Shown here one piece after another: positions 12,733 to 43,998 of a DNA stretch of 64,000 bases. Origin of the DNA: Monocercomonoides exilis PA203 (taxonomy: Eukaryota > Protista > Preaxostyla); the NCBI GenBank assembly GCA_001643675.2, contig LSRY02000042.1, positions 310,001 through 374,000 of the forward strand, given 5' to 3'. The position numbers and the translations under genes were made by a program. How positions within the stretch are numbered: the stretch's first letter is position 1; each line of letters opens with the position of its first letter. The notes beneath the pieces are model-generated. The model saw only the letters and a program-made list of their open reading frames with translations, made no database searches and was not told the DNA's origin.

Positions 12733-13697
12733 CAACCCCGCGCTGCTCTCGAAAACTCAATCTTTTTTCTTCACTTCTCAGAAATAAATTAGTTATGGTA
12801 TCAATATTTTGGATCGTATTTCTGTATTCTTTTTTTTTTTTTAAACTGCAAGCTTCTTGAAAAGTAATCTATGAATTTTCCTCTTCGCAAAACAACAATG
12901 TTTATTAAATATTTTTGATTTCTTTCTTTAATTCAAAACTATGCTGATGAAGTTGGGTGATTTGAATAATGGAGATTTTTTTAATAACCATACATTAATT
13001 TGAATCAATGACTCTCAATTCAAATAAAAGGGCAATTATTAAAAATCAACACGGGAAAAAAAATTAGAAAATGGGTGATTTTTTTTGATATCATGAAAAA
13101 TTCCGACGTTTGATCAAAAAAATTTTTCATTAAGGGTTGGGTTGATTAGAAAATATTTTTGTTTAATTATGCAAAAATATTCATTAATATATGATTATTA
13201 TTTATTATTTGTTGATTTTAATTTGTTTCCAATTGTTTTTATTTCATATTTTATAAAAATTATAAAATATTAATCAAAAATATAAAGAATTCAATAAAAA
13301 GAACAAGATGCTTGCTTAATCGTTAATACAACATGATAATAATAACTTCGATACGTTATTAATCAATTTTTTATATAAAAACTTGTTTTATGATGTCATT
13401 TCAAAGTATTTTAGAAATTGAAATTGAAGATCAAAAAACTTTAGATAAAAACAATCAATTTTCAATAATAAACATTGAAAAATATGATGGAAACACATAA
13501 TATTTGTAGAAAAAACTATTGTTTATTGTTAATAATTGTTTTTAAATTAATAATTCTGGAAATTAGTTATTCAAATTAATTGATCAAAGCTATTGAAAAA
13601 AAATACAAAGAAATTATGAATAAATAAATAGAAATACAAATATTTCTGTTTCAGATACAACAAAATATTTTGATGAACAGCTGGCTTTATTTTTTAA

Positions 13698-16600
13698 CTA
13701 TTCTCCACCTCTTAGGAATCGCCTTCCTTGTTCACTGAGTCCCACTTTCATTGTTTCTCTTTCAGCTGATCCGCTTTTCGCTCGATGCTCCTTTTTAACA
13801 CAAACTTCCCAATAACCCCTTTCATATGTGACTGCGGAGGCAGCAAAAAGGGAGTGGGTATCTGGATCATTGCACTTTCGCTTCAGCATCCTAGTCACAG
13901 TCATTTATCCTCATCGATTCTCCATCCACTTTTGCGAAACTCGCATTCCTCTTGCTTTCATCCCTTTGAGGTGTTTAAGCTTCTCTCATTTGCTGTTTTC
14001 TACAAACCCAGAGCAGAATTCGTATTGAAATCTTCAAACTTCACAATCATTATGCTCTCATAAGTCTGGCGATATCCAGCTTGCGCTTGTCAGCGGTGTG
14101 AGCGAAGAGTTGCAATGTTGTGCATCAACTTCAACCTCACGCCTCCACTTTATCATCTTCTGCTGTTCCAAGCTGATATTCTGCTGACAAAATATATGCT
14201 TCTCTATCTGCCAGTTCGGCTCCGCGCTTGTCCACCTGGGACCCACATCCACAGCCGTCCTACACATCAACCACCAGAGTTGCCTTTCCAACATTCGAAT
14301 TAAATCTGTTTAGAAAAATATTGTTCTTGTTGGCTTTAACTCTGCCAGCTCGCTGATGTTCATTTCTCAATTTCTGTCACATCTTTTCACATTATTCAAA
14401 CTCTTTTGCACGGTCTTCCCTCTTCTCCATCCTTTTCGGATCTCTTGCTTTTATCTCCTGACTCTTTTCTCCAACAGAGATGCATCTGAACCTCAACTCC
14501 AAGCTCCATTGTTTTCGAAGAGAAAATCTGCCAGACAGCTTCTTTAGCATGTTCTACTCTCTTCGACGACCATTTTGCTGAACCAGCTCGTCATCAACAC
14601 GCTTTATCATTTCAAAAAAAAAACCCAACGGATCTCGCAAATTTTGCTGATGCTCTGAAAAAGCTTTCCACATTTTGTGCATAACAGTGGTGCTTATATA
14701 ATTGCACCTCGTCTTCACTTGAAGCCTGCTCGGTAAACAGAGAATATCCACAGTATTCACAAGGCTCTATCAGCAACTGGTCAGAAATGAACATACGAGT
14801 AACCACATTTGAAACACAAAATTTAAAGGAATACATTCGCAAATTGGATTTTCTTCTTATCATTTTCCAGAGTAACACAGCAGTCACAGTCTTCTTAGTT
14901 AAAGGAAGCATGTGCCCCCAACAGCTGTTTGTTCGCCAATAACAAGGCAGCTACAATCAGTTATTGTTATCAAAATGGAAACAACATACAGTCATATGCC
15001 TGAATGTTCAACCTTTTTTCACTCTGATGGTTAACAGGAATTCCAGCTTTTTTCTTCATATGGCTCCTCATTTACAGATATGCCCTTCACTGCGTGGATG
15101 ATCAGTTCCTTTCCCTTCTCTTCGTTGTTGATCTCTTTATAAATCAGGAAAAATCCACAGACAGAATGATTCAAATAAATAACAATTGCACCTTTCTCAG
15201 TAGTAGTATTACGTTCTGGCTCTTCTTCGTCTTCTGTTCCAGCTTCTCCTATTTTCCAGTTAACTTCTTTCTTTTTTATCTCTTCAATTTTTTTCAATCC
15301 GATTTCCATTCATCATTCATTGTGAAAACAACTCTTTTCGTCTCTTTCTCTTAATACTCATCATTAACTTATCAATCTTTTTCGCATTATTATCTGTTTC
15401 ATTTCTTCAGAAATGACCATCATCTTTATTTCAATTATTATTTCTTGAACACATGCGAAAAATAAAGAAACTCAATCATTTTTAGTGAGTGATGATGACA
15501 ATGAAGGTGTGTGATATGTTTTTTCAGCACAAGAAGAAAAAGACGAAGAAGAAGAAGAAGCTAGCAAATTGAATAATGAAAAACAAATTCGCACTTTAAC
15601 TTGGCATTTTCTCAGAATGTTTCAGTTCTTTTGAAATACAACTCTTTTCTTCATCTTCTTCTTTTGTTGTTCTTTCAAAAAAGATAAGTTTTCCGAATTG
15701 TCATCTTCTCCTTTTTCTGCAGTTGAAAATGTGCTTTTATTGTGAAACACATCTGCGAAGCTTTCAAATTGAACAGCCTGCCTGTCAAAATACAGATCAT
15801 CTTGAATATGAAAAACCTTCATCCACCAAACAACAAGAAAGCGATTCAACATTCTGCTTGATCCACACTTTCCTCTGCTTCGCACAACCTTTGAAAAATG
15901 AATCACTTCTTTCAATCTTCTTCTTCTTCTGATACGAGGCAAATGCCTCCCACTTTTTCTCAGCCTGCTCCAGCGCCTTCTTTTGCTCGTCTTCGAGCTT
16001 TTCCCGATCTTTCTCCGAGTTTTCCTTCTCTTCCTCCAGCAGCTCCTCTCTCTCCTTCTCTGTCTCTTTCTTCTGCATCTTCTCCATCTTCGGCTATATA
16101 GCTTTCTCCAACTCAATTCGTTCGATGCGGCTTGGAATAGCCGACAATTTTGGCTCAGGAAAGCACATTGACGAAGAAGAAACTGGATACAATATTTGAT
16201 TTGTGAAAGTTGGAGTATTGGTGGAAGAAGGAGATATAGATAACTTTGAAAAAGGAGGTGAAAGTGATGGTGTTGAAGGAGGTAAAGCATTATCAATATG
16301 ACAGAAATCAGATGGAATATGTGAGGAGAAAAAAGAAGGTTATGATGATGATAAGATTGAAGAAGAAGAAAAGTTTGTCGATGTCGTTTGCTGAGGAATT
16401 GACTGAAGAGTCTGATTCGGTCCAATTGACATTGTGTTAATAGCATTTTGCTGGTAAAAAGGCAAGCTTATAATTCTTTCTGCTTCTCTTTCTCTTTCTT
16501 CTCTCAGCTTCCTTTCTTTGATTCGCATCAATCTTTCGTCTATTTCCTTCTTAACCTTCATCAAATATTCCTTTCACCACATCCTGTCTTTTTCTTCCTC

Positions 16601-18123
16601 CTTAAACCACTTGTCATCTCAAAGCGCATTGTGACATATAGATATCGGAATTAGTGTTCTTTCTGGTGTCAGCAACGAATATAGCGTAAGAAAATCTGTG
16701 TTCTTCTTCACCTTTTTCCTCCTCTTCATCCCTTCCAATGAAGCATGAATGTTGCTTCGTGGAGCCTTTGAATGGATATTATTCCTTTGTGGAGAAATCA
16801 TTGAAGAAACATGAGAGATAGACAAAGCAGAGGATGATGATTGAGAAACAGATGGGGTCAAAGCTTTGTTAGCAGTTGTATTCTTTGACATAAAGAAATC
16901 ATCATCTTCTTCTTGAAGCATAACCATGTTATTTTTGCTGCATTTCTTCCTTCAAGCTGCCATTTTTTTTGTCTTTTCCTTTGGATCACTGAAAAACGTT
17001 TTGACGCTCTGTGAATAAGAAGAAGATGATGATGAAATCACTGAATACGTGTAACGAGCATGCCTGCCTTTCAACGAAGCTGATTTCGACACTTCAGACT
17101 CACTTCAGTTCAAAACACTCTGCTCGCTTTTCCTTCTCTCTTCGTTCCATTCTCACTCCACAGAAAATAGTCCATCTCCTCTTTATAACATTTTCATTGA
17201 ATTCGCATTTCCCACCTCTGCTTATCTTCATTGTGGAATGAAACCCAAATAGTCTTTGTGTTCCACTAATTTTCCATATAACAGCCATTTCAGCAGGAAT
17301 GAATAACAAGAGATGTTCTGACTTAATCAAATGACTCCAAATGCATCACTCTATCGACTTTGCTTTTTGAAATACCATCTTTCTCTGTTTATAAAGAACC
17401 CTCGTGTTCAATTTTTTTTCACTTCCAATTCCTCTTTCATTGCTTTCTGAGCTGATAAGAATACCTCTCCTCTCCTCCAGCTTCTTTTCCCCATGCACAC
17501 TGATCTTTTCTCTCCTTTTCCATTTCCTGCTCTGCGCTGCTTCAATCGATTTCAGCTTCATCTTCATTTGTTTCTCAGTGGAAATCGGGATGATGTTTGT
17601 CTTCCGGTTGAACCAAGCTGCCTCCACACGCTGATGCTCATTCCTTTTCACGCTCTTCCACAAGGTCGTCCAATGGATTGTCATTATACACTTTTTTTAA
17701 TTGTTGCTGCTTTCTTTCATTGTCTTTCAACTCGAAATCGTTGAATTGAAACTTCGGCTTTTTTTTCATTCTTTATATATTCCAACCTATGAATAATATT
17801 CCCTTCTCATTATCCCCTCCTCATTTCATCCTTCTCCTTTGCTCTCTTGCGCTTTCTGCCTCTGCTCCTTATAGAACTCTTTCCTTATTTTCTCTCACCA
17901 TTTTCTCGAAATAATCATCTTGCTCATCATCATTTAGTTTCTCTAAGCTTCCTTCTATCACAGCTTTCAGTTCAGCATTATCCTTATTTCCCATGTATTT
18001 TTCCACTCCCTCCTCCTCTTTTTCTTTCTTGTTTTGTCTGTAGAGCTTATCCAATACTTTATAAAGTTCTTTTCTTCACTTTCCAATCTTTCACACAATG
18101 ATTTTGTTCTGTGACATTTCATA
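13698..18123 (-). pseudogene. Decayed large gene(s) of unknown function (cargo)
   Basis: Coding-like composition over ~4.4 kb broken into many short minus-strand ORFs by stops and frameshifts; its 5' end lies in repeat R1. Confidence 0.6.
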
Positions 18124-18831
18124 TTTCAGATACACTTCCTAATAAAAAATGAATATTGATAATTTGATAATAATTTCATATCACACATTAATAGAAATAC
18201 AATGACTGGATTTTATAAATTTTTCAAATTAATAATAAAAACAAACTTTGTCAAAAATGAACAAGAATTAATATAGTCACATTGAATAGTCTTTCTCTTT
18301 GTTTCATCAAAAATTGTCTATGTGCCAAACAAAATTACCAGTTTCTAAATAAATAGGTCAAAATTCTTATATTAATGAAAAATAACAACGATTTGTAACA
18401 AACCTTTTATACAGCTTTGTCATTACAAGTCAGACGTCCTCACATATTAAATATATAGAATGACTGAAAAAAAATAAGAAAAATCTTCGAAGACAGTGCA
18501 TGGGAAACAATTCATTTCACACAACACTTCATCCCAAATAAAAAATATGTTAAAAAACAAATTATTACCAACTTTTTCCACTAACAGATTTTCAAAAAAA
18601 GCATCAGACATGTTTATTATTGTTATTTATTCGCATTGAGCAAAATAGATCATGGTATTCTTAATGGCGCCATTAATAATAATTTGTATTTTTTATGATC
18701 AAAAATTTCAAAAATTTTTCAAAATTTTTTATTTTTGTTTCATTTAATTTGTGAATATTATTGTTTTATTAATGCAAACATTTCATCAGAAATTGGTTTT
18801 GATTTTTTTATTGTTTGAATAAAGGTGAAAA
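18027..18831 (+). repeat. Internal repeat R1 (~800 bp); inverted copy of R3, direct copy of R2
   Basis: Near-identical to the reverse complement of 37107-37912; 18221-18774 recurs at 33587-34140. Confidence 0.95.
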
Positions 18832-19684
18832 TATGTTTTTTAATTTTTCATTGAATTTTCATTTCAAATGAGAAAAAATATCTTTGAAAAATTTAACACT
18901 TAAAAATTTTTTGTTTTTGTATGAACATGTTTATAATAATTGTTCTATTCAATATATAACTGTTTTGTTATCAATATCTTTATTGTTGAGTAACTACAAC
19001 GGTTGATGAATATTCAGTGATGAGAAAAACATAAAAATAAATTCATTGCAAATTCGATAACAATCATAAAACAAAATAACACATAAATAACAATAGTACT
19101 TCATTATATGGGTTATTCTTTTTGAAAAGTCGCAAACGTTTAACTGATCTGAAAATTCGATCAAAAAAGATCAAAAAATGTTGATCATACCGTTCCCGTT
19201 ATTGTTTTGAAAATTTTATATTTTGTAATTTATTTCGCTTTTAAAAGAAAAACAGGATAGAAATATGTTAAAATTATATAGATTTTTAACTTTATTTTGT
19301 GATACACTTATGTCAACATATGCATTCCAGCTATTTGAATAAAATGAATTAAATGTTTTTATTTCTTCATTTTCATTTCATCAGTTCGAATATTCATTAT
19401 GAATTCATGGATAATTACTTTGTTTTTAATGTTATTTTTGTTGAAATATAAATAAAATTTTGTTCGCTTGAATAAAAGAATATTTTTATTAAGAATTATC
19501 AAACAGGAAAATTTTCTTAAAACAACGCTTATAACAATCGAAAGATATTCGAAGAGTTGTAAACATTGAGCAATTATTTATATTATTTTTAAAAATTGAA
19601 GTTAGATATTTTAATATTCAAAAAAATCTCCATTTATTTCAAACTCAAAAATGTAATCTCTTCAAATATAAATAAACAAACAGT

Positions 19685-22600
19685 TTGTATCAAACAATTT
19701 TCTTTCATCATCAGCACCTGCGATTGATCCTTCGGATGCTTCTGCGTCATCAGCTTCAAACACGTCGGAAGTGGTGTTGGACGACATCGAGAGGCGGCTG
19801 CGGATTATTGTGCCAGAGGCGGCTGGAGTGTATGGGCAGCACATTCCGCTGTCGCTGCAGCTGCTGCTATCGCCGCGGGAGCAGCAGGCACAACGGGAAT
19901 ATGTTGTTGCACTTTCCGCGATGCTTTCGGTTCCGCTGGTGGCGCCTCTTCCATCGCTTGCAACGTCTGTATGGACGAAGTCGGGGAGTAGGAGGATATT
20001 TGCAGCGGTTGATGTGAATGCGCTCCCGTCGATATAAGATCAGTTTGATGCGTCGCTGCAGATATGGTGATCGCAACAGTCGAGTCGTGTGGTGGTGAAG
20101 CTGGATGACGAAATGATGGAATAAGGGGTTTCAGTGTATGAGGTGGGGGAGATTGCGGAGAAGGGGCAGTCGGAGGCAGGGCTGAGGAGAAGGATATGGT
20201 TCTGTCTCCAGCAGCGATTGCGTTGGCAGTTCCAAAGTGCGAGTTGATAGAGAGGAATGTGATGGGAATGAGGCCAAAGGCGTGTATCCAACGTCATACA
20301 GAGAGTTTGTGGAAAGAATAAAACAAAACCAGATGAAGCTGGAAGAAGCAATTGCGCTGCTGATTGTGGAGGCGCTTGGGCTGAGTCGGCTGAGGTTTGT
20401 GAAGGCGGAGACATGGATAGCGATTTTTTCAGAGAGTAGCCTGCAACAAATGCTGAACAATGCACTCACTTTGCGTGCCTGCTATGTAACATCGGAATTC
20501 GCGAGAAATAAGAATGTTACAGCAGGAAAAGAATATGAGTGTTTGATTATTTCTTCAATGAAAAGTCGAATTGAAATAACTGGAGATGTGGAGCAGTTGT
20601 AAATATCAGTTGACCGTTTGACAATAATTGAGGAAAAAGACAAATTCGATGAAAAAGTTGAGGAAGAAACTTGTTTTCTTTGTGCTGGGTGATAAGAAGA
20701 ATAGGAAGAGGAAGAAGAAGAGGAATGGGGAGGAGAGGTTGAGCGAAGGCAGAATAGTGGAGTGCTCGTTGCTGTTGAATCTGGTGGTGAGCTGAAGAGA
20801 AGTGTTCTGGTTTAACAAGGCAGTCAACGAATGATGTGTGTGATTTGCAGATAAGCGGTTTGTGACTGTGCTGGACGAACTGAACATGCTGCTACCAAGA
20901 AGTCGTACAGCTTCGTGAATCAACGAACGTAGATACAGCAGAAGCACAACACCGAAGAAGCAGTTGTTTCTGGAGCCGTGCGAGATTTTGGTTCCATATT
21001 CAACAGGGGGGTGGCATGGATGAAGCAGACTATTGTGGAAGGCTTGGAAGACGAGTTTTGTGCTCTTTTAAGAACGTTTCAGGTACAAAGCAGAGGAGCG
21101 CGAGTTTGCTTGTCGTATCTGCATCGTCAGGAAGGAGTTGATTCAAATGCTTTGTATGCTTCTTGCAGCATATGCATATACGATGCAATGACGTGGTAGC
21201 GCATGTTGGAATGATACATGGATGATTGGGAAAATGCTATGTCAAAAACGGCGGAGTGTGTTGAAACGACATGGATACCAGAGAAGGAGCAGAAGCAGGT
21301 TATGAAAAGGAGATGCTGATCAATTGCAAGTTGATAATGTGAGCGCATGCTTTAGTAAGTGTGTTTGATGACCCGTCTGATGCGTAGACGCAGATAACAC
21401 GGTAGCATGAGGGGAGGCAGGCAGAGGTTCAAACAGCAAAAGTGGAAGGGTGTTCTTCACGTTGGACAAGAGGCTGGATACAGAAAAAGATAACTTCCAT
21501 CTTTGGTTGAAGTCAGCAGCGTGGCTAAGGAATATAATGGATTAAAAGTCTGTACTGATGCATCAGGTTGTGACGAAGAAGACTTGGAGGATTGAGGCAA
21601 GCTCAGATGCAGGGGATACGATCTGTGTTGGAGAAAGTGGAGGGATGATGGCAGACATGATGGAGAGAATAAGGAAGAAGATGATGATGAACATTGTGAT
21701 AGGAGAGGGAACGGGAGCAGCGCAGAACTGGAGGAGAAGCGTTTCAGACTGGAAGAACATCAACTTTTAGGGGGTTTCAACAACAGTTGTGCTGAACGAA
21801 GCACCAGGGGAATGGAAGAGGAGGCGTGTGGTTATTTCGACGGAAGTGATTGCAGTGAAGGGGCAGAGCATTACCGTAGTGACAACAGCCGATGAGAGCG
21901 AGGAAGCGAAAATGATGGATGCGGATCAAGTTTGTATCACGGAAGAAGGAAAATTGAGGGAAAAGAAGAAGGAGTAGGAGAAGGACGATTGAGTGAAATA
22001 CGGCTGATGAATGTGTTTGACCCGAAGAAGCATGTCTTGCAGAAGATGCACTCGGCGCTGATTCTGCCAGAAAAAGTGCTGAGAAGCAGATGTTGGGAAG
22101 CAGAAGATGAGAAGGATGAAGAAAAGAAGGAAGAAAAGAAGGAACAGAAGGAGAAGGAGAAGGAGAAAATAAAATCATCGACATCAACATCATCAAGATG
22201 TGAAAGTGAATGTTCCAGTTCAAATGGGAAGAAGACAGGAGGAGTGTCATTGAAGAAAGCATATCTTTCGAAATGTGTTGCGACGCGGAAGAAAAAAGAT
22301 CTGTCGACATCTTCATATGAATGCTACAGTTGCTTTGGAGGAATTCTTCATCTGCTGAAGTGCGTGATGAAGGCGAAGACGAAGAAGAATGAGGGAGACG
22401 AGGCAAAAGTGAGGGCATTTGATGCGTGGTGTAATGCGTTTGATGAGCTGTACAAGTTGGTTGATGAGGATGAGGATGAAGATGAAGATGAAGATGAAGA
22501 TGAAGATGAAGAGAAAGAAGAAGAGAAAGAAGAAGGAGAAGAGAAGAAGGAGAAGAGAAGAAGGAGAAGAGAAGAAGGAGAAGAGAAGAAGGAGAAGAGA

Positions 22601-24900
22601 AGAAGGAGAAGAGAAGAAGAAATTCCAATAGTTTTGCGATCTAGACAGCGAATTTGCATGTGAGGAAACGAATATTCTGCTGTTCAAAAAGGCGCCAAAA
22701 TTCTTTGCGAAAGCGGTTCGGCCGAGTTTGGCGAGCAAAAAGGAGAAGACGGTGGTTGACCACTATCTGCTGGGCACGGAAGATGTGGGGATGTTTGAGG
22801 AATACGCAGAGACAGCTTTGTGCGCTGGGCTGAATGCAGTGGAGCAAGTGCCTGTGCCGGCAAGACTGGTGGAGTTGGGGCAGAAGGCTAAGAAAAGAGG
22901 AGAAGGAAGAGGAGAAGGAAGAGGAGAAGGAAGAGGAGAAGAATTACAAAAGAGGAGTGTGAGGAGATGTGTGGCGCTTGTGGAGAATGTGAAAGTGAAG
23001 ATGAAGAAGCAAGCGAGATATAAGAAAGAAGAGGAGAAGATGTTTGAGACTGTGCTTCGATCGGGATTGGATGTTGAGGGGTTGATTGAGGCAGAAGAAG
23101 AAGAAGCAAGAAGAAAGAGCAGTGTGAAAGGAGAATCGGCGCGAGCATTCAACGAAAGAGGGGTTTTGTCTCAAGATGAAAGTACATATCAGAACGATGG
23201 AAGTGAATGTGATTTGAGTTTGCGTTTCGAATGAGACGGCAACGATAAAGCTGATGGAGCTTGTGCAGAATAAAGAAGGGATTCTTCCTGACATGCAGAA
23301 GATTATTTTCAACGATGTGCAGCTGAGTGACATGCGCGCAATGGGAGGGTGAAACATTCGGAACAATGACGAGCTGAAGCTGATGCTGTGTCTGCTTGGA
23401 GGTGCAACTGAAGCGAAATAGCAGATGAGGCAGACGAAGCAGATTGAAAGAGAGGTGAGGTTGAGTGGTAGAATGGCAATGTCGATGGTTGAGACGGCAG
23501 GAGCAGGTGCATTGGCAGTGCTGATGCTGATAACGGTGATGCAATCGAATGCAATACAGAGAATGAGCAAGCAGGAGCGATGCCTCGAAAAGCATTTCAG
23601 ATTGTCCACTCATTTTCAGCGGATGTACAGTAAAGTACTAAGAAGTTGAAGAATATGGAAGCAGAGAATGAGCGTTATGACTTTGCTTCTTCTTCTTGTG
23701 GCTCTTTTGCAGATTGTGGTGGAGGTGGTGTTGAGGAAGAAGAAGAGATAGCCAATTGTGAAGTTCCTGCAGATGGAACATTCAAAGGAAGAGATGGAGA
23801 AATAATATTATCGCGCGAAGACTATTCTGACTGCTCCAATTGAGTGGAGCCATTTCTATCTGGATAATGAGCGATATCTGCTTTGGGGAGCTGTAGAAGG
23901 GAAAGAATGCGATGTTTGAAGGTGCATGAAGGTTCTTCCTTTTGTGTCAGTGAATGTGATTGAAGGCACTGATACGTTTACGTCAGCAGCGTTTGTAGCC
24001 GCACTGACAGATATTTGTGTGCGGCCGGTTTGTGTAGAAAAGGTATTAAGAACGATGAGATGAAGTGGAAGTTCTTCTATTTGAAGAATGAAAACAGCAG
24101 CTGTGCTGTTTGTGAAGGAGGTGGAGTGGTTTGATGAAAAAAAGAAGTGAAAGAAAAGGAAAGAGAAAGAAAAGGATAAAGGCAAACGATAAAACACAGA
24201 TCGGTGTTGAACGGGCCAAGCAAATGCATGTACATGAAATCGGTAGTTGTGCAGGAGTTTGTATATGATGTGGGCTAAATGTGGGAAGTGAAAGAGGAAG
24301 GGTGGAAGGTGAGGAAGGATGTTGGATGGGAGAAGATGCGAGCAGGGTGTGTGTGTGTACGATGCGGTTCTGACGAACACGAAGGAGGTGCAGAGGTCTG
24401 TGGAGGTGCTGATGCAAGTGCCAGGAGGGTCGATTGTGCTGCAAAGGGGCAGTGCGACGAGGACACAGAGCGTTGTTCTGGGGGCGTATGGGACGTAGAC
24501 GGTGTCGTATGCGTTCTATTTCCCGGAGGGTGGGGAGTTTGTGCACTATCCTGCGCAAATGGCAATGCGAGGGCATTGGATGTACTGCAGCCGAGAAGGA
24601 CAAAGATACTTGTGGCAGAGCGCGCTACTGCACAGCCAGAGCGAAGAGATTGGGCGTATGTGTCGCAGGAGGCAGAGATAATAGTGTTGCTGGAGTTTCA
24701 GGAGAAGGAGAATCTCCTCAAAGCGGATGAAGAATTTTCAATGATAATGTTCCGGAGGGAGGAGAAGAGTATGTTTGATAGTGTGATTGCGTGATGTTTC
24801 CTTCGTGTGAAGATGACTGTGACGAAAGCAGATGTGTGTGCGCTTCAGTGTTGCCCGTTTATCAATGTGCGGACTTTTGTGTTAGGGAAAGAGTGCCAAA
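19685..24900 (+). pseudogene. Decayed intronless large gene with an internal ubiquitin-like domain
   Basis: GC-richer coding-like tract with many stops and frameshifts. Readable blocks include FFAKAVRPSLASKKEKTVVDHYLL, VEVLMQVPGGSIVL...YAFYFPEGGEFVHYPA and DWAYVSQEA...FQEKENL; Ubl at 23176-23403. Confidence 0.7.
23176..23403 (+). pseudogene. Ubiquitin-like domain, 76 codons, two internal TGA
   Basis: MKVHIRTMEVNVI*VCVSNETATIKLMELVQNKEGILPDMQKIIFNDVQLSDMRAMGG*NIRNNDELKLMLCLLGG aligns without gaps to ubiquitin (QDKEGIPPDQQRLIF...LRLRGG). Confidence 0.85.
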
Positions 24901-26065: not shown

Positions 26066-26069
26066 TTTC

Positions 26070-28915: not shown

Positions 28916-28922
28916 GTGAGGG

Positions 28923-29018
<96 letters not shown>

Positions 29019-30606: not shown

Positions 30607-31129
30607 GTGAATTGGAATTTTTTTTTAAATTTTTTTAAAAAATGAAATAAAAAATAAACCTTCGAATATATTTTTTTTTTTTTTCAATTTGAATTGATTA
30701 ACTCATTTTTTTGTAAAAGTTCGTTTTCATTATTAAATATTTTTTTTCATGCAAAATAAATCAAAAAAATGAAACGAACCATCAAAATAAATTAGTTTTG
30801 ATAACAAATAGAAATAAAAAAATTATTTCTAAATAAAAAATTCTGAAATGAGAAAATAATAATAAAAAAAAAGAGAGATATATAAATTTTTAAATACTGC
30901 ACAGATGTGTTGAATAGAGATTATTTGTTTAACTGATGAACAAATAAAAATAATAAGTTTGATTATTGTTTGAACATCAACAATTATTTATTTATTTTCT
31001 TTTTGAAATATCCGAGATGAAACAATAACTATAAATAAACAATTTTAATTTTTTTTATGTTTCATTTCACAAATCTTCTTTTATTTTCTTTTTCACATTA
31101 TTATTCATCGATCACAATCAAAACACATA

Positions 31130-33330
31130 TATCCTCTTTTTGATCACTTTTTTCTCCTAATGCCAATAATCATCCATTTCTGCTTCGCTTTTTTTGTAAT
31201 TTCACCACCGACTTCATTCACATTTGAAAAAGATAATAACAATTTGAGATCGAAAATGTGAAGATAACGATAGTGATAATTCATTGAAATGAAATTCCTT
31301 CAACTTGAACAGCCTTTAAGAACATGCGACTGCACAACACACATACGCATTTCTCTCCTTTTGTCCTCTTTCCTCCAATCGGCCAAATTATCGAAGCATC
31401 CGACTTGATCAGTGGACGACTCTCTTCTGTATCTAATATAATTTCTCTCTTCTCTCCTTTCTCACACGCCCTCTTCTGCAATGCAGGGTGCTCCTCGCAC
31501 GCAGACACACCAGACACACCAGCCTCAGCTCGATGCTCCCACCTGCCACACCCCCAAAGCCAATTCGCTCATGTGACAATAAGCATAACTGGCCAGGAAG
31601 TTGAGAAAGAGGAACATGGAGTTGCTGTCTTTTTCTCATCCACAAGTGGCTCTGCTCCTTCCTTCGCGATGAAACCGTTGCCTTCCAGCAGCGCTTGCAG
31701 AACTGTTTCCATGTGAGTTATTCCTTCTGTTCCATCACTTCCTCCTCCGGCTGCTCCTTGTGCTCCTCCTTGTGCTCCACCAATTCCCATCACTATTCCA
31801 TTGTTCGATGATGGTGAATGATTCGTTCCATTCACATTCCCATCTCCTCAAACTGCTCCTCCTATTCCAACATTCGCGTTCATCACACTCATCGAGCTGT
31901 ACCTGCTTCCCAGATTGATCGGAATCCTTTCCAAATAACCTCTTTGCATCAGCGGACGGAAGAAACAATTTGTTTTCCACATTTCATGCGCTTGCACAAT
32001 CCCTGTCGTGAAAAGTTATTCAAACAGTGAATATTCAGATGTGGAAAAACTCAGCCGCTCTTCATCAGTCAGATCGAGTCTGTTGTCGATGCTCGTCCCA
32101 CCTTTGTTCCGCATCACGATCGACTGCATTGGTGCATCCACCTCGCCGATGGGTTATTTATTCCAGTAAATGCATTTCCGTTTCTTCTTCTTCTCGCTCG
32201 CTCTCAAACCCAACACGTGCTTTGATTTGAATTAGCATCTGGCATGCAATCTTCTTCACCGCGTGCTTCCCTCCTCCCAGATGCTTTCAGATGAACGAAG
32301 CTTGATGAATACACTTGCTGTGGCTGTCACATGAAAATCTATTCACACGTTCTTCTCCGGTTTCAAGATGTCCCTCGCGTGGATCTATTGAAATGGGACA
32401 TATTCATTCTCATTTGTTTTCTCCTTGATTTCCACAACTTCCATCTCCTCCATTGTTATCATTTTATCCTCCTCCTTCTCCTCCACTTGCTCCTCCACCT
32501 CCATTTCCACCCAGGCCCATCCCTCCCATCTGATGCATCATCCCCTTCCTCATATTTCCTTCCTCCACTCAATACTCCACTCTTCCATTAAAATTTGTAA
32601 ATTTGTGTGTTTGCTAATCAATAGGATATTTTCATGTTGCTTTGCACACACACACACAAACACCTCTGTGTCTTTATACAGCAGCGGATTGGCACCTAAA
32701 TTGAAAGGAAAATGCAACAGATCCGGCAGCAAGCGCATGCCAGCCTCTGTGTAGAGCAGCCCATCGTAGCGGTTGAATGTCTCGTCGGCTGGAGCGAGCT
32801 CGTGGGCAAACGCGTGGTTCAACTGGATCAAAGCTAGTTCTTTCCACAGAATCGCCTTCTCTGTGTTGTGGCTGTGCACATCCACAACAGTTGCAGAAGG
32901 AAGGATCCACAGGCCAATCACCACATGCAATGCAGTTGCGTTGCTTTTCGACTGCATTCGTTGCATCTCGTTTGTTTCTTGCTCTTCTTCTCGACTCTGC
33001 GGCATCATTGAGGATGTTGGAGAAGAACGAACTGACTGCGATGGTCTGTTGATGTCTCCAGCATCAGAAAATTTCTCCAAGCATCCACTTGTTTTTTGAT
33101 TGTCTGTTTCAACCACAAATACAGAACTACATGTGTTCAACATGCGAAGAACTGGGCGAAAAAAGTATTTGATTTTTTCGTGTGTTCTTGCAAAAATGGC
33201 TCCGTTAAGCGGTCAAATTGACAGATCAGTCAATAAAGAAGAAGGGGAAGAAGAAGAGGAGGAGGATGCTGAAGAGACAAGAGAGAAATACACATTGTTG
33301 TCGAGAACTCTCATCAGTTGGTTCTGAATG
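31130..33330 (-). pseudogene. Decayed gene fragment of unknown function (cargo)
   Basis: Coding-like composition; chain of short minus-strand ORFs (32550-33143, 31735-31980, 31569-31835, 31281-31517) broken by stops and frameshifts. Confidence 0.55.
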
Positions 33331-33586
33331 AATGATGGAATTGAGGTTGAACATTATTTAATTGAAAAAAAACAGGAATGAGCATCTTTATTTGAATAAA
33401 CTCAAAAGTTGGAAAAAAAATATATATAATCGTTAATGAAAAGGCAAACAACACGAAACATTTCAATAAGCCTTTCTAATTTTTCTCGAAATGATATATT
33501 TATTTATATTATGTTTAATAGCTTCATTCATCTTCTTGTCATCACTTCAGTCACTTAAAAAAAGACAATAATTGATTTTTGAGTAT

Positions 33587-34140
33587 TTTGCAAATTGATA
33601 ATAAAAACATACTTTGTTAAAAATGAACAAGAATTAATATAGTCACATTGAATAGTCTTTCTCTTTGTTTCATCAAAAATTGTCTATGTGCCAAACAAAA
33701 TTACCAGTTTCTAAATAAATAGGTCAAAATTCTTATATTAATGAAAAATAACAACGATTTGTAACAAACCTTTTATACAGCTTTGTCATTACAAGTCAGA
33801 CGTCCTCACATATTAAATATATAGAATGACTGAAAAAAAATAAGAAAAATCTTCGAAGACAGTGCATGGGAAACAATTCATTTCACACAACACTTCATCC
33901 CAAATAAAAAATATGTTAAAAAACAAATTATTACCAACTTTTTCCACTAACAGATTTTCAAAAAAAGCATCAGACATGTTTATTATTGTTATTTATTCGC
34001 ATTGAGCAAAATAGATCATGGTATTCTTAATGGCGCCATTAATAATAATTTGTATTTTTTATGATCAAAAATTTCAAAAATTTTTCAAAATTTTTTATTT
34101 TTGTTTCATTTAATTTGTGAATATTATTGCTTTGTTAATG
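33587..34140 (+). repeat. Internal repeat R2 (~550 bp)
   Basis: Direct near-identical copy of 18221-18774; inverted relative to ~37165-37718. Confidence 0.95.
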
Positions 34141-34497
34141 TAAAAAAAGTCATATGAATGTTGTTAATTAATTATTAAAACTTTTTTTTTAATGTGATAT
34201 CAAAATTAATAAAAATAATATTTATCAGAAATTTAAATATTTTTTTTTGAAGTATTTGACATTTATTTTTTAATTATCAAATAATGAGAAAGCAATATGA
34301 GTTGTTAATTATTTTTTCCGCAATGAAAAAAAATTTAGAAATTTTCATTAAACTTTGAATATTTTTTTTATCGTATCTTATTTTATATTTGTTCAAAAAT
34401 AGATAAACATTTTTTATATTTTTATGTTCAATTTTTTATTGGTCAGAAATTTAACATATTTAGTTGAATTTGATTTTTATTATTTTTTTTTTGTTTT

Positions 34498-37012
34498 ATG
34501 AGTTCCATTTCTCATAAAAAAATTCCCATATATTGCAATTTCATTGACTGGATCGGTTTATCGACAATGTTGTCAGCTAAAAGGGTTCATAATGGATTGG
34601 AATTTAGAAGCCTGCAGAAGGATATGGTCCAACTCACAAATTTTTTTCAAAAAATGTCACTCTCTCACGCAGAAATGGTTTCATTTATGTTTTTCCAACA
34701 AACACAAGTAGGAAGGCAACTTTTCGAAAGTTTATTAAAATCATTTAATGGCGTGTCTTTCTTAAACAATGTTTTATTTATGTAATTTTACTTTATTCAA
34801 TGTTTTTTTAAATATTCTTTTTTTATTTATAAATATTTATTATTATTATTTTTTTATTTTGCAATATGAAGATCCACTGAAACGAACCATAAAAGAGCTG
34901 AGTCATGTTTTCAATAGCCTCTCCTATGAATTACAAAGTGAAATGCTATTGATTCTGACAAAAGAATTCTCTCAGCAGACACTAAGCCAAGAGTTTGGGT
35001 TTGTAATTAAACCAGCGCCTTTTCAAGCATCCTTTTTCGATCAAAAGAAAGAAATTTCAACAGACAGAACACCGCCAATGAAAAGGAAACAACGTTCTTC
35101 TCAACGTGATTCTTCAAAATCATATTTTGGATATCTTGGAGCCGAAAATGAAAAAATTAAAACAATAGAAATAGATATGGAAGATTCAGAAGATTGCATT
35201 TCACTCAATTACACTCCGAAATCATCTTCATTATCACCATCAACTTCAACATTATCATCATCCTCATCTTCCTCAATCAACCCTCTCTCCTTTCCATCTC
35301 CTTTTATGTTTTCTGCTTTTCCTCCATCAGAAAAATCAATTCCATCATCTTCTTCACCTTTCCCATCATTCTCATCTCCTTCCTCCTCCTCATTCCCATC
35401 GACTTCATTTTCTTCCTCATCCTTCCCTTCTGCTTCAAATTTATCCTCTTTCCATCCTTTGAATATGGCTTCTCCATCTTCATTTCAATCTTCCTTCTCC
35501 CCATCATTTCCATCTTCTTTCCCATCAACTCCTTCGAATATTCATCCTTCAACAGTTTCATCCGCATCCTCATCTGCTTCCTTTCCTGATTCCCCCTCTT
35601 CCTCTTCCTCTTTGTCTTCTTCTCTTTCTCCTTTTCCTTCCCCTTCCACTTCTCCTTCTCCTCCATCTTACTCCTCTCCTTCCTCTCTCTCATCCTCCTC
35701 TTCCTCTTCCTCTCCTTTATTTTCATCTTCTCCTTCTCCTTCTCCTCCATCTCACTCCTCTCCTTCCTCTTCATCCTCCTCCTCTTCTTCTTGTTCTTCT
35801 TGTTCTTGTTCTTCTTCCTCCTCCTCCACTTCCTCTCCCTCTTTAACTTTGTCAACTTTATCACCCTTAGAGCCAGAGTTCGCAACACTCTTTCACAGCA
35901 CAAAGAAAATATCTTCAAATGAAGATGACGATATGGAATCCAATTCAAAAAACCCTTCAAGAACTGACACAGTTTATCTGATGTTTGCACCAATTGAGAG
36001 ATTTATCGACTGTTTATCAATGCATGTGATGGATGGTGATGTGGGTTCAAGATCTTGTGTTTACAAATACAAAATTTCGAAAAGAGGATTGAGGAATCTG
36101 GGAAAGACTTGTTCATTCAGTTCATTATGTCAATGTTTTGCATCTCTGGATTTGGGAAGGAGCTTTTCGAGCAAAAGAAACTTAACAGATCGACAATCGC
36201 TTCAATTGGTTCTGCAATGTTTGAGTGGGTGTGATTTTCAGAAATTCTTTTGGGGAACGAAGAGAATGATTCAGATGTTTGAGAATAATTTTGGACCATT
36301 GATGGAACCTAAAGGTTCTCTTTCAACATATGAAAAATTTCTGGAGTTATTGTCGGAGGAGGATGATGGTGTTATTAAAAAGTTTCAACTTCATAGTCAC
36401 AAGTTTATGAAATGTCAGTCTTGTAATCAATTGACTTCAAAGCCAAGGGGAATCACGTTGGAGGTGCCAATATCAAACGCTGATATTGTTGAAGGTTTAA
36501 ATTCTTATTTTTCTGTCGTGAAAGAGGAGGAGGATCAAATGAAACAGGTGTGTGGAAAATGTTCAACTGGAAGAATTGAATTGAAATGGATCAGGCTTGA
36601 TGCTTTTCCATGTGTTTTGTGTGTGTTTCATAACAATCTGACACCTTCATCAGTCAATCCCCCTCCAACTCAACTGTTTGTTGCTGAAAAAGGAAATGGC
36701 CCTTTTGATATCTGCTTTTTTGATCCTTTGAAAGCAAAAACTTCCCTGAAATTCTTCTCTGACAATAATATGATTGCAGCAAAATATCAGCTTTGTGGAA
36801 CTGTGATTCATTCAACATCAAAATTCAAAGATGGACATTTCATTGCAGTTGTGAAGGATAAAAAGCATTTGATTGAAGAGAAAAGCATTTTCTTTGAATG
36901 CGACGATGAGGTTGTTTCACTGCTAGCATTTGATAAATGGAATCAGTATTGGAAAAATTTATCACTGGAAGGATGGAAGTCAGGATTAACATTTTATCAA
37001 CTTATTGAATAA
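34498..37012 (+). CDS. USP-domain protein paralogous to the N-terminal half of the transposase-USP, lacking the transposase core; 2 exons
   Basis: Exon 1 ends LLKSFN-G (paralogue LLKSLN-G). Exon 2 KELSHVF...LLILTKEFSQQTLSQEFGFVI parallels KDLSVVY...ILQALTRNASLSELLDYGFDI. Ser/Pro linker; Cys box RGLRNLGKTCSFSSLCQCF; His box DGHFIAVV...FECDDE. Intron borders uncertain. Confidence 0.8.
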
Positions 37013-37106: not shown

Positions 37107-37912
37107 TTTTCACCTTTATTCAAACAATAAAAAAATCAAAACCAATTTCTGATGAAATGTTTGCATTAATAAAACAATAATATTCACAAATTAAATGAAA
37201 CAAAAATAAAAAATTTTGAAAAATTTTTGAAATTTTTGATCATAAAAAATACAAATTATTATTAATGGCGCCATTAAGAATACCATGATCTATTTTGCTC
37301 AATGCGAATAAATAACAATAATAAACATGTCTGATGCTTTTTTTGAAAATCTGTTAGTGGAAAAAGTTGGTAATAATTTGTTTTTTAACATATTTTTTAT
37401 TTGGGATGAAGTGTTGTGTGAAATGAATTGTTTCCCATGCACTGTCTTCGAAGATTTTTCTTATTTTTTTTCAGTCATTCTATATATTTAATATGTGAGG
37501 ACGTCTGACTTGTAATGACAAAGCTGTATAAAAGGTTTGTTACAAATCGTTGTTATTTTTCATTAATATAAGAATTTTGACCTATTTATTTAGAAACTGG
37601 TAATTTTGTTTGGCACATAGACAATTTTTGATGAAACAAAGAGAAAGACTATTCAATGTGACTATATTAATTCTTGTTCATTTTTGACAAAGTTTGTTTT
37701 TATTATTAATTTGAAAAATTTATAAAATCCAGTCATTGTATTTCTATTAATGTGTGATATGAAATTATTATCAAATTATCAATATTCATTTTTTATTAGG
37801 AAGTGTATCTGAAATATGAAATGTCACAGAACAAAATCATTGTGTGAAAGATTGGAAAGTGAAGAAAAGAACTTTATAAAGTATTGGATAAGCTCTACAG
37901 GCAAAACAAGAG
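37107..37912 (-). repeat. Internal repeat R3 (~800 bp), inverted relative to R1 and R2
   Basis: Reverse complement of 18027-18831. Confidence 0.95.
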
Positions 37913-40421
37913 AGATGAAGATGAGCAGGGAGTGAAAGAAGCTTAGAAAGATTCTGACAGTGTTCCGAAGAAGTTGAGAAGAATTCGATGATGAAGACTG
38001 ACGGAACATAAGCTCAGGGGATGGATGGCTGTATGAAGAGGACAATGCAGACGATGAGAATATTCTGAAGCTGATGAGCTATGAGAATGTGGTGAATGTG
38101 GGAGGAATTCTATCAGATGACGAATCAACTGACAGCTCAGAAAGCGATGTGAATGAAAAGGAAGGAGCATATGATGATGATGCGAATGACACTGAAACAA
38201 AACAAAGTGCTTCGATGAAAAAGAAAGAAAACGAAAACAACGAAGTTCAAGAAAGTGTTGAAATGCTTCAAAAGAAAGTTAATCAAACAGAAGCAGAAAA
38301 GAATACAAACGCAAAAGAATCAATAAGAAACGGCAAAAAAGACGAAACGCATTCAGATGAGCCAAAACCAGAGCCTCTTTCATAACAATCCAAGCAAAAA
38401 CAGAAGCAGCAGCAGTAACAGAACATCAATTCCATCTCCAATGCAATCATCTTCTCCACAGCCTAAATAATACTCTTCAGCAAGAGATACCTTTGGAACG
38501 ATGTACTTTACACGAGGGAAGCGAATGAACGGCGGATGGAGATGGGGAGAGGAGCTGTTGGTGCACCAATAACGCTTCCATCAACAGTTGTTGTTGTTGG
38601 AGGAGGAGTGGTGATATTAGGTGTGATGGGGATGAAGAAGTTCAACAGAAAAGTGACAAGGGCGATGCAAGATGAGTTTCAGAATGAGAAAGGGAAAGTG
38701 GACGATGAAGAGGCGAAGATCGCGTTTAATTCATTGGAATCTAATGATCAGAGAGAGAAACAGCTTTAGTTGATGAAACAACAGGAAATACAGAAGAAGA
38801 AGAAGGAGAAAGAAGAAGAGCGGGAATGCAGAAAAATGGAGAAAATGACGAAGAAGATAGAGGAAAGAGACAAAAATCTGTTTAGCAGCATCCAAGGAAT
38901 TCTGCAACCACACCTTGAGACAGGCACACCGATTAACCAGAAGGAGAACAAAATGGCAAGCGAGGCGCAGCAAGAGGCGAAAGAAAACCAAACGCCAATT
39001 TTAACAAGAGAGCAGAAATTGGACTGCATGTTGAATGACCTCGCTAATTCTGACCTGGAAGATTTGAGCGATGAACTAGATGTACCTTGCCGTTATGTGT
39101 GTATCAAAAGCGAGGAGAACGGGCAATTTGTGTGGAAGATGCGAAAAGTGCCTGTGTATGCGGCAGTCGACGCGAGGCATACAAGAACGCGGTTGGATCT
39201 GATGAGTGCGCTGAAGAGCGGGCTGAGACAGAGCAGGGCGGAGTTGAGAAGAGGAAGGGGGATGAAGTGGAGGGGCTGGTGGCCATGCAAAGAGGAAGCA
39301 GAGGCGACACTCAGGAAGGGAAGGAAATGAGCAGGGAAAGGATCACCTTTGATGTTTCAGAAGGAGAAAGGGATAAGAACATTCAATCAGAGCAGTGTTC
39401 CTGGAAGAAGAGATGCTCTGTCGAAGCTGTTTTCTTCGCTATCTTTCTCGTAGTTGGCATCTTTCTTCATTTCTCACAACAGAAGAAAGAACCCAGGAAC
39501 TTCTGTTGGCCCTAAAAACTTTGGATGCTCATCTCACAAAAGACTGCAAAATCGACTCAAAATCACCAGCTCTTTCAACCTCTTCACCAAGTTCGGGTGC
39601 TTCTTCTCCCGCGATTCAACCTCAGTTCATTCCTATTCGAACGAAGGAAAATGAAAAATCCGCAACTCAGCAAACTTCGTCTTCTTCTTCATCTTCTTCG
39701 TCATCTTCTTCATCTCCTGTTTTTACCTCTGCTTCTTCTGCTTCAACTCCTCCTGCTATTCGACCGCTTGCACTGGAAGGAGGGAAAAGTCCTTCTACTC
39801 CAAACAAATTGCACCTTTCTTCGTCTGAGCAAATCGCTTTTGATCCTTTGGATGCAATCAACCAGGTGAAAGAACAAGCACAAAAGACAGAAACAAACAG
39901 AAAAGAGGTTTCACCAAAAGAGCAAACAGGAAATCTTCCTATTGAAAATGTGAATGAAACTGCTATTGTTCAAAAGAGTCCATTGATTTCAGAAGCGTTG
40001 CTTCCGCGTTCCAGTTCAAGGCATTTGTTTCCTGTGTATCCTGTTCCCTCTCAACAGCAAGCAGTCGCAAAGAAAAAGAAAGCTGCTTCAATGCTGTCAC
40101 CGAAGCCGCAGCGCCTGCGAAGAGAAATGTGGCTGGGTGAACTGATAAAAGAGTGGCTTGTGTATGAAGATGCTGACCAGGATGCGTGGAATGAGATGAG
40201 AGAGATGGATGCAAAGGAGAACGAGGAAGGGTTTGAGACTGAAAGTTACAGTGAAGAAGAAGAGGAGGAAGAAGAGAAGGAGAAAGAAAGTGATGAATTA
40301 ACAGAGAGAACAAAAGAAGATAGACAAGATGATGAAACGAAAAAAGAAGAAGATGGTCAATTGGTAGAAATGCAATCTTCGTCTTCACACATTCCTGATG
40401 ATAATATTCAAAAACGTCATC

Positions 40422-40452
<31 letters not shown>

Positions 40453-42890
40453 TCACAAAGATTCAACAGGCAGACATCATCAAAAGAATATTTGCCCAAT
40501 TCACTCTTCCTCTTCATCGTCTCGTGTGATGTTCAGAAGGTGTCTTCCACTCACTCGGACACAAACAGTCATTATTTCTCAACAATCGCAGGCTGTTTCA
40601 TCAACGCGACATTTCGTTCCCTCAAAAAAGATATTCGTTGTGAATGCTCTTTTGTTTGACCTGCCAAACCAATCTGTTTCTCAAACACAGCAACAGCCAT
40701 ATTCGTCAACATCCTCTTCGTTTTCTCCTTCTTCAATCTCTCCTTCAGCAGCCAGCTCCATTCGCCTCATGCAGCTTATGCAGCTCACACGGGGTATCAA
40801 CAGAGAAGTGACAATAAACGAGACAGAGATGCAATTTCCACAAAAGATACAAGGCGCTCGTGTACTCAACTCTGCCTCCACACAGCCGATTGCCCAGCGC
40901 ATCCATCCAATCATTCTATACGGAGATCTGTCTGCTCATTCGCTCGAAGACCCCGCTCTGCGCTTCCTTCTTCAGGGAGTGGAGACACAAACACACCCAT
41001 CTTTATGTAAAGGAGGAGTTGTTACAAGAGCACTGACTGCTCCGTCGATGGCAAATGAGAATGTGGAGATGGCAGAAACGACAGAAAAGATGAAGAGAAA
41101 AAAAGTGCTCCCGAAGAGGATTGGATGTGTTCGTGCATTGTGGAGAAGAGAATGAAGACTGAGACAAGAAAATGACTCTGCAATAACTTCAGCTCTGCAG
41201 CATTTGGATTCATTCGCTCCATCTTCTTCTTCTTCGTATTCAAACAATAATCCAAAATTACTTCGACGCCGCCATTTTGCAGAAGCAGACGGGATGTCTT
41301 ATCTTCGCGAAGAAGAAAATGAGCTGATGTTTGTTGTGCCAACAGCTATGAAGCAGCGGAGGGCAGAATTAACGCAGAAGAATCCAACGTATTTCAGATA
41401 GATGAAGCAAAAGGAAGCAGTTACCAGAACTGTTTTGATGAAAAAGCTGAAAAGGAAAGAAATAGAACTTCCTCAATTTTCTTTTAGCAAAAATTTGGAG
41501 GAAAAGATTGAAAAAAGAAAACGCAATGAAAAAGAGAGTTGTAAAAGGCATGATTCAGAGAATGAGTCTGATTCTGATTCAAAAATGAAAGATAGAATTC
41601 AAACGAAAAAGAATGAAGAACAGATAGACAAAACTTCTTCGTGTTCATTTGAAATTCAACAAGTTCACCCAATTTTCCGTCAAACTTCATTTTCTTCACC
41701 AAAGTTTCGTGTTTTTCGACTGCTTGGCGCTTCAAGTTATTCATTTTTGCATCCATCTTCTCAGACTTATTCATCTTCACCTTTATCACATTCGTTGGCT
41801 GAGACATCAAAATCACCTTGTTCTTATTCATTGCTTGATTTATCACAGTCTTCCACCTCTTCTTCTCCTTGGGACTTCAATCGAATTGCAAAGGCGACAC
41901 AGTTACCACTTGTTCCGCACATGTTTCAACCTCTTCACAGACGCTTTCCTTCGTCTCTTTCTGATCCGCATTCACTTGTGTGGTGGATGCGCCTGATGAG
42001 CGAAATGAATTTGTAATTCAAAAACGAGAGTGATAATGATGATGACGGTGCTGATATCGAATTTGATGAAGATTCATGTTATATGGAAATAAATGATGAA
42101 AGTGATGATTGAACTGGAAAGACAATGGAACAAGAACAGCAGAGATTGAATCAAAGTAATACATTTGCCATATGCAGTCAGGGCGATAGTGCTTCATTGT
42201 GCTTGATGAACAGTCGAACAGACAGAAGAGCCAGATTAATACAAAGACGAAGGAGCAACCAGATAAATGATAATATTTATATACCACATGATTTTGATCA
42301 ATCGCAACTTCATCCTTTATATCCTTTTGTATTGTCTTCATTTTCTCCTTCAACTCCTTATTTTTCATCAACCTTCTTCAACGAACAACAAAAAAATTGT
42401 CATTTCCATTTCATTCAACTCCTGTTAAATCCAGGGCCAAGCGTCATCTTTTATTTTCTTTTCGGAAGCACAAAAGGATTATTTATTCTATCGCAGAATA
42501 TCAGCTGAAATTATATGTCAACGGAAGTGATTCAATATCAAACCAAGAAAAGCCGATCGTCGGGTGCACAATCCATGAAGGTTGCTTCTGCATAATTCAT
42601 TTTGAGATTGAAAGAATTCACCGAAAACAGAAGGAGCAGGGCAGAAAACGTTATTTGGAACAAATTATAATGTGGATGATCTTCGAGAGATTGCATAATG
42701 TCATGCGCCTTCAATATATCGCAGAAGATGAAACAAAGAGAGAAAGCGGTTGTTTTAGGAAAACAAATAATCGAAGGACAAATCTATGAAATAAGTGCGT
42801 CTGCAGCGGATGAAAAAGGAGAAATGTGAATGGCAAAAGAAATTGAAGGTTTTGAAGAGCTTGTTGATATGATTGAAGAAACAAAATTAG
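37816..42890 (+). pseudogene. Decayed large low-complexity gene(s) of unknown function (cargo)
   Basis: ORFs starting 38074, 38536 and 38770 share one frame; those starting 39395, 41204, 41402 and 42125 share another. They are separated by isolated in-frame stops; the 5' end lies in R3. Confidence 0.65.
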
Positions 42891-43998
42891 AGGAACTTAT
42901 GAAGATATATTTTTTCTGTGTTGATGTTATTCTTTTTCAAAGCAAATAGTAGCATATATGCCAGTTGAAAATGGGATGAAAGCTCATGAATTTGGAAATG
43001 ACACGGAAAATATTCAAAAATTAAAAGAAACAATGATAGAAAATCAACTGTTTTATATGATGAAAATAGAAGGAACAATAAAGAAAATAGAAAAAGGTTA
43101 TCTTTTCCAGTGATTTTTGTATTTGGAGCACGGAATGTGAGAGTGTTTGTGGGAGTGAAAGAGGAGATGAGAAGAGAGAGGGAGGCATCGCTGAAGGGAG
43201 CAACGCATCCGAGAACATGCTCCATCGTGGCAAATGGGTTTTTCTGTGTTTTGCTACAAGCATCTGCATCAATTCCACCATTTGCAACGATTTTATTCCC
43301 GTTGTTTGTTGCATCCTTTTCAACATTATCTCCATTTGACGAATCCGTTGAACTGCTCAGCAACAACAGGAACTTAATGATGAAGTTTCAGCAAAATTAA
43401 TATTAAACGCATCGCAACTTCTTTTGAAAATTCACAAATTTTATGTATATAAAGCCATCCATAATGTTCAACAAATAATATTTTCTTCAAATATTTTTGT
43501 ATTGCAAGTTTTGAAACTTGTGAATATATTTTTAAATTTTAGGTTCATTTTTATTTCATTTGATCAAAAAAAAATTCTTTTTAATCAAAACATTAAAAAG
43601 GTATGCTTTTTTTCATATGAACAAATAAAACAAATATATATGACAGAAATAAAAGCTAAATATACATGAAAAATCAATTTAACTCTTTGATCAATAAATA
43701 CCACAATATATATTATTTTTACGATTTTTGATCTTTTTTTATGATATCAAAAAAAATCACCCAAATATCAATATAGATATCGCATAAATACAGGACATCG
43801 CACAAAAAACCGGACAAGATCGAATTCACAACAACTGAAAGAGGAATAATTCTGACAATTATCCTCAAAATACATCTCATCAGTACAAACTCATTTGATA
43901 AACGAGGCTTAATGAATAGCTTCATTTGTGCTCAGAATAAAATATTTATAAAATCTCGGAGAAACTCAAAATTCTATTTCTCTAAGATTTCGAAATAT

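Follow-up and report, generated by a model that had tools for sequence, protein, structure and literature searches.

A stretch of 64,000 nucleotides from Monocercomonoides exilis PA203 (contig LSRY02000042.1, positions 310,001 to 374,000; C39:310001-374000 in our numbering), here called the window, was analyzed. It harbors a transposable element (TE) which very probably is a Sola2 cut-and-paste transposon of the DDD type with a mobile unit of about 24.4 kb; it carries decaying host cargo, contains at this locus a nested non-autonomous relative, and encodes two USP domains that would aid the element. The genome searched comprised 82,301,135 bp in 101 contigs (labelled C1, C2 and so on).

A unit of about 24.4 kb present whole at three sites

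The terminal inverted repeats (TIRs) of the window element match at 27 of 28 bp, the outer 22 bp being identical, and the termini read GGG...CCC. A 4-bp target site duplication (TSD), AAAT, adjoins each TIR. An earlier sequence-only reading had described these ends in the same terms, and all of its statements on them were confirmed; the span it gave, 13069-43766, is that of the TIR-bounded element with both TSDs taken in (Table 1). These termini would fit GRG...CYC, the form that the sequence-only reading gave for Sola2.

Sister copies were found by a genome search with the element interior, followed by alignment of the fetched regions. Two of them, on C2 and C65, are full-length and collinear with the window copy; their identities in Table 1 were computed over aligned columns against the window copy. 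The three copies occupy different target sites, with the TSDs ATAT, ATAT and AAAT. The TIR-bounded unit has therefore been copied in full on at least two occasions. A further sister on C20 runs from the left end to a point corresponding to window position 42881, its right end being absent from the fetched stretch, and one on C27 comprises the left part up to the limit of the fetched stretch. Right halves are present on C2 and C21, 8-13 kb from telomere repeats.

All four sisters covering the site of the nested insertion pass directly from window position 19109 to 25398. The nested element plus one of its TSDs makes up 6,288 bp of the window span, and the unit common to the sisters amounts to 24,402 bp. 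The demonstrated mobile unit is thus about 24.4 kb in size and is found whole at three sites. The earlier proposal of one giant element of 30.7 kb stood as to the TIR-bounded, Sola-type structure, the captured host-gene pieces and the nested relative; movement of 30.7 kb as a unit was not supported, about 24 kb being demonstrated.

The nested 6,284-bp element has TIRs related to those of the outer element, and no transposase was found in it by tblastn. Its cargo matches open frames of 1,942-2,829 amino acids (aa) elsewhere at 68-81% on the aa level. Nothing forbids that the whole 30.7 kb including the nested element arrived at C39 in one jump, since the TIRs and TSDs of both elements are undamaged and the transposase frame is open. 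We consider this unlikely, however: the 30.7-kb form was seen once, the nested element is present in the window copy only, with the empty site in the four sisters, and its own copies on C51, C69, C1 and C15 stop at its borders, so that insertion in place is the simpler order of events. The sister on C27 holds another nested Sola-like element of about 4.9 kb (C27:650485-655372) with ATTT flanks, which carries a piece related to cargo B. These separate insertions in the window and C27 copies indicate that nesting is common in the family.

Facing exact TIRs were also observed 35.0 kb apart at C24:717089-752118; they enclose a match to the transposase (724746-727794) and, at 739028, a second USP. 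This locus is a candidate for an element larger than that in the window.

Table 1. Positions of the features of the window element (window coordinates) and of its full-length sister copies
Feature	Position	Strand	Remarks
Left TSD AAAT	13069..13072	.	
Left TIR, then L-type subterminal sequence to about 13600	13073..13100	+	27 of 28 bp match the right TIR
Cargo A, decayed host-gene piece	14500..17997 (start approximate)	-	match to long open frame
Internal repeat module, copy 1	17998..18831	+	834 bp; 99% inverted match to 37107-37940
TSD ATAT of nested element, first copy	19106..19109	.	
Nested non-autonomous Sola-like element, 6,284 bp	19110..25393	.	TIR 23/24; decayed host cargo
TSD ATAT of nested element, second copy	25394..25397	.	
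Strongly folded stretch directly 3' of the transposase stop	25925..26066	-	minimum free energy -56.4 kcal/mol, z -5.7
Sola2 transposase, intact, spliced, 1,262 aa	26070..30040	-	exons 30040-29875, 29773-29543, 29461-26070
439-bp palindrome just upstream of the transposase start	30168..30606	.	94% self-complementary; also in sisters
Cargo C, decayed, CFAP65-like Ig domain	31000..33540 (start approximate)	-	Pfam PF24816 at E 1e-6 (score 29, cut-off 24)
Internal repeat module, copy 2, partial	33542..34144	+	matches copies 1 and 3 at 96-97%
USP-only accessory gene, N-terminal part and intact USP	34498..37012	+	main open frame 34769-37012; upstream exon inferred
Internal repeat module, copy 3, inverted	37107..37940	-	
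Cargo B, decayed piece of giant host gene	37941..42900 (end approximate)	+	DNA and aa match on C25
Right TIR, R-type subterminal sequence from about 43300	43735..43762	-	27 of 28 bp match the left TIR
Right TSD AAAT	43763..43766	.	
Full-length collinear sister	C2:1234350-1258683		24,334 bp; ATAT at both ends; 94.4% identical
Full-length collinear sister	C65:57486-81057		23,572 bp; ATAT at both ends; 92.1% identical

Transposase and USP domains

The introns of the transposase gene are GT-AG and in frame, and its exon layout is that of MONOS_11334. The main exon was used for database searches; 690 relatives of the transposase core were obtained at E ≤ 0.001. Across 30 homologues the columns D76, C78, C81, D142, D224, H260, G261, K262 and D266 are invariant. 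The motif series RTD.CxxC, DFKE, DxG/AxH and HGK..D follows, as judged by eye, the same order as in Sola2_DFa-2 and Sola2_PPa-1 (PMC3627910 supplement 3). A predicted structure (predicted local distance difference test, pLDDT, 79.5) came nearest to DDE transposases and integrases with an RNase H-like fold, with weak scores (best E 8e-5). By its transposase motifs, its TIRs and the 4-bp AWWT TSD, the element is assigned to Sola2. The TSD is also a hallmark of Sola1 (PMC3845634) and does not separate the two groups; the sequence-only reading had wavered between them, and its Sola-type assignment is now narrowed to Sola2 by the motifs. Judged by eye, exon 2 is similar to the N-terminal region of Sola2_DFa-2 and Sola2_PPa-1; the USP domain is hence an insertion in the transposase, situated after its N-terminal domain and before the CxxC/DDD core.

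In the window, C2, C65 and C27 copies the transposase frame is uninterrupted; in the C20 copy it contains one stop. Comparison with the sisters gave a ratio of nonsynonymous to synonymous substitution rates (dN/dS) of 0.05-0.09 for the DDD core. The folded stretch 3' of the gene holds an inner perfect hairpin common to the sisters, and no Rfam family matched it. The half copy on C21 starts inside the palindrome located upstream of the gene. A more distant transposase of the USP-plus-Sola2 type, matching at 53% in its core and at 34% in its USP, lies at C2:23197-25998 and adjoins the right end of the C2 half copy.

The USP/C19 domain inside the transposase was recognized by Pfam UCH (E 9e-15) and by matches to USP12/USP46. 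A dN/dS of 0.11-0.22 against the sisters indicates that this domain is under purifying selection. The second USP gene has only the USP domain in common with the transposase main exon, at 30% identity, and a match to the DDD core was not found in it. It had previously been taken for a paralogue of the transposase; this claim failed, and the open frame 34769-37012 was rejected as a second transposase because it lacks the core. The USP of this gene is 94-100% identical in six other loci. A genome search with the gene yielded 127 scored USP matches, many of them in frames of 1,000-1,250 aa; several are arranged as divergent pairs with a spacing of about 3.8 kb (on C9, C21, C28, C36, C58, C59 and C80), indicating that the two-USP layout recurs in the family. 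Judged from these comparisons, the USP-only gene is an old accessory gene rather than a fresh truncation. Among the best 150 of the 690 core relatives, three contain a USP, all of them near-identical family members; none was found in the other 147, most of which are short, so that the rarity of the USP among Sola2-core relatives is suggestive only.

Both USP domains could be carried along passively and owe their similarity to recent copying and gene conversion instead of to function. Conversion is evident in this family (see below), and the dN/dS of the USP-only gene (0.05-0.42) rests on few changes, one sister copy being frameshifted. Nevertheless, such passivity appears improbable: the Cys, His and Asp boxes, aligned to USP12, are intact in both genes although the two USP lineages are only 30% identical, and both the low dN/dS of the transposase-internal domain and the many long open frames among the genomic USP matches argue against it.

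End family and flanks of the copies

A genome-wide search with the 22-mer TIR, allowing up to two mismatches, gave 577 forward and 582 reverse matches, i.e. about 1,160, and none with the reversed control. No further copy was found between the TIRs of the window element with up to five mismatches allowed; a nearer partner for either end, which the sequence-only reading had named as a ground for doubt, is thus not present. When 30 family ends were fetched, all were flanked by AWWT and 29 could be assigned to an L or an R type by the sequence inside the TIR. All nine facing pairs with fetched flanks consist of one L and one R end with matching TSDs and span 4.5, 5.3, 5.7, 6.1, 12.0, 12.8, 19.5, 19.8 and 21.1 kb; the probability that all nine TSDs match by chance, considering the TSD match alone, is 7e-4. 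The end pair of the window element is also L plus R.

Homology between the element and its sisters ends at the TIRs. The right flank of the window copy and both flanks of the C65 copy have a dispersed repeat in common (76-84%). Together with the two half copies near telomeres, this repeat may point to segmental duplications or assembly duplicates instead of products of transposition. We regard that origin as very improbable, because the homology stops at the TIRs, the TSDs differ (AAAT versus ATAT), and the 300-bp flanks of the C2 copy match none of the other copies' 300-bp flanks. Moreover, the C65 ends abut other positions of the repeat, the repeat is less alike than the element, and a difference of 6-8% between copies is too large for assembly duplicates. 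An empty site for the outer insertion was sought in paralogous loci and none was found; the flank adjoining the left TIR is single-copy, and on the right the element borders on the dispersed repeat.

The abundance of the TIR, likewise raised beforehand as a possible objection, is real, and with only four TSD words in use a TIR plus matching AAAT is in itself weak evidence. Two orphan ends facing each other across a TE-rich graveyard might therefore be imagined (about 1,160 ends lie in 82.3 Mb, the TSDs are drawn from four 4-mers with a probability of 0.13 that a partner reads ATTT, and a hand calculation gives such a partner within 31 kb to about 1-2% of orphan left ends), but two other loci with the same 24 kb, the same order and end types and TSDs of their own rule out chance pairing, which is hardly credible unless the assembly is wrong at three places.

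Window positions 43767-43998 constitute one arm of the dispersed repeat, which is palindromic and into which the C65 sister is also inserted. The position of the C65 insertion is that at which the window has a miniature inverted-repeat transposable element (MITE; 43999-44241), suggesting a common insertion hotspot. This 243-bp high-copy MITE has ends resembling the TIR of the nested element and an ATAT flank; dozens of copies exist at 85-89%.

Cargo, internal modules and comparison with known elements

The piece 16622-16951 of cargo A shows 62% on the aa level (E 4e-34) to an open frame of 3,531 aa at C2:804361; many TE-borne fragments match it too. Cargo C matches a 2,378-aa open frame at C30:482800 (78% aa), and cargo B resembles C25:1661627-1666627 at 83-91% on the DNA level, with 93% aa identity to a 5,757-aa open frame. 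Each cargo block tested has a candidate host parent in such a very long intact open frame elsewhere. Stops and frameshifts differ between copies, and cargo dN/dS is 0.45-0.74. Judging by these signs of decay, the cargo blocks are decaying passengers. A Pfam scan of ten cargo pieces gave no match above the cut-off. The family apparently copies pieces of the host's giant genes, which may explain part of the unclassified repeats that make up 35% of the M. exilis genome (PMC8767320); some "uncharacterized" MONOS gene models may represent cargo of TEs or parts of the transposase.

The internal repeat module is AT-rich, and each of its three copies has a cargo block on the same side. Its inverted arms show no mismatch over a 570-bp core within each of the window, C2, C20 and C21 copies; between those copies, they mostly differ at 3-12 positions. 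The segment 33552-37743 is inverted in the C20 sister, and identity to the sisters swings between 76 and 100% in 600-bp steps. The identical arms, the inversion and the patchy identity together indicate frequent recombination and conversion inside and between elements. The 834-bp inverted repeat was rejected as a pair of TIRs of an inner 20-kb element: its ends have neither a GGG terminus nor a TSD, there is a third copy, and its behavior is that of a module inside the element.

We propose that the transposase, bound to the two short TIRs, cuts out the entire unit and places it at AWWT, and that copy number would rise through gap repair or replication as in other class II elements. Cargo may be copied from host genes by repair synthesis at the edge of the internal module. 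Recombination and conversion between module copies and between family members would join cargo arms, flip the interior and leave the patchwork of identity; in the simplest reading, captured arms were later combined into one long unit keeping two working ends. Both USP domains are predicted to be active deubiquitinases (DUBs) that benefit the element; in the simplest case, they would keep the transposase from being degraded. A bolder proposal is a self-rebuilding cargo platform, in which two selected DUBs, diverged from each other, would act against the ubiquitin-based control of transposition by the host, the module would be a functional site of cargo capture and exchange, and 24-35 kb would be moved by a DDD transposon; this we offer tentatively, as a possibility we rather doubt.

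Several points weigh against the proposed Sola2 transposition of a cargo-bearing unit. All copies belong to one strain and one assembly, and the assembly is the sole source of their junctions. The truncated C20 sister, which has no right end, and the subtelomeric right halves on C2 and C21 suggest that some of the spread may be due to ectopic recombination. Because identity is patchy (76-100% in windows of 600 bp), the dN/dS values are in part those of older relatives that were copied in. The layout is the only guide to the step of cargo capture.

Sola2 elements that carry passenger genes, have AWWT TSDs and measure 10.3-15.3 kb have been published (PMC3627910), and the earlier statement that Sola elements are normally a few kb long makes the size look more novel than it is. 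The window element shares with the Sola2-Fanzor elements DFa-1/2/3 of Dictyostelium fasciculatum and PPa-1/4/5 of Polysphondylium pallidum (PMC3627910) the transposase motif series, AWWT TSDs, short TIRs (12-22 bp there), large size with a passenger, and chimeric families with one arm in common. It differs in being 24 kb long and in carrying decaying host-gene fragments where those carry an intact Fanzor; furthermore, it adds the USP inside the transposase, the second USP-only gene and the recombining internal inverted modules. Pack-MULEs and other Pack-type TIR elements (PMC6431247) likewise hold host gene fragments left decaying between TIRs, and the nested 6.3-kb element works like a Pack-type element. 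Pack-MULEs, however, belong to the Mutator family, are non-autonomous, depend on mobilisation in trans and are mostly 1-2 kb long (7 kb at most), whereas the window element, though it acts in the manner of a Pack element, is a 24-kb Sola2 element with its own transposase and a 4-bp TSD. Helitrons carrying VTD or OTU domains (PMC9741609) resemble it in having a transposon protein with a conserved DUB domain, and these domains were proposed to shield transposition proteins from the proteasome (PMC9741609); here the DUB is of the USP/C19 type and the element a DDD cut-and-paste transposon.

Polinton/Maverick, Teratorn and Starship elements are similar in spanning tens of kb with passenger DNA, but the window element has a 4-bp TSD, short TIRs and a Sola2 DDD enzyme. 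Among the open reading frames scanned, no Pfam match to PolB, retroviral-type integrase or capsid genes (Polinton/Maverick) or to a tyrosine recombinase captain (Starship) was obtained, and, apart from the transposase and the USP gene, the element has no long intact frames. Plants are known to harbor large CACTA elements of about 20 kb, hence the size is rare, not unique, for a DDE element. Efficiency of transposition is said to fall with cargo over 6 kb (PMC6431247); about 24 kb moved by a plain cut-and-paste transposase is about four times that limit and larger than the published Sola2 elements that we found (up to 15.3 kb). Thus, large Sola2 elements with passengers, gene-fragment capture by Pack-MULEs and DUB domains in Helitrons are each known separately. 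We have not found described their combination in a 24-kb, multi-copy, apparently autonomous Sola2 element with a USP in its transposase, a second USP gene and recombining modules; the literature searched, which is incomplete, yielded no report of Sola elements in Monocercomonoides or of USP-transposase fusions. With a USP inside the transposase and a second USP gene, the question why mobile elements carry DUBs becomes testable with two proteins.

The element is flanked on the left by a Ras/Rab-family exon (11932-12390) and on the right by an Rce1-like/CPBP match (45235-45903). A 96% identical paralogue of the Rab-family gene (window 11556-12836) lies on the same contig at C39:504906-506186; four others show 78-83%. 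Two inverted copies of window 44245-44700 are found on C46 (123526-123976 and 131349-131793; 91%) and are possibly the long TIR of another element. Outside the element, an open frame of 2,329 aa, in which an endonuclease/exonuclease/phosphatase family 2 domain was recognized (E 2e-36), extends over window positions 49774-56763 on the plus strand.

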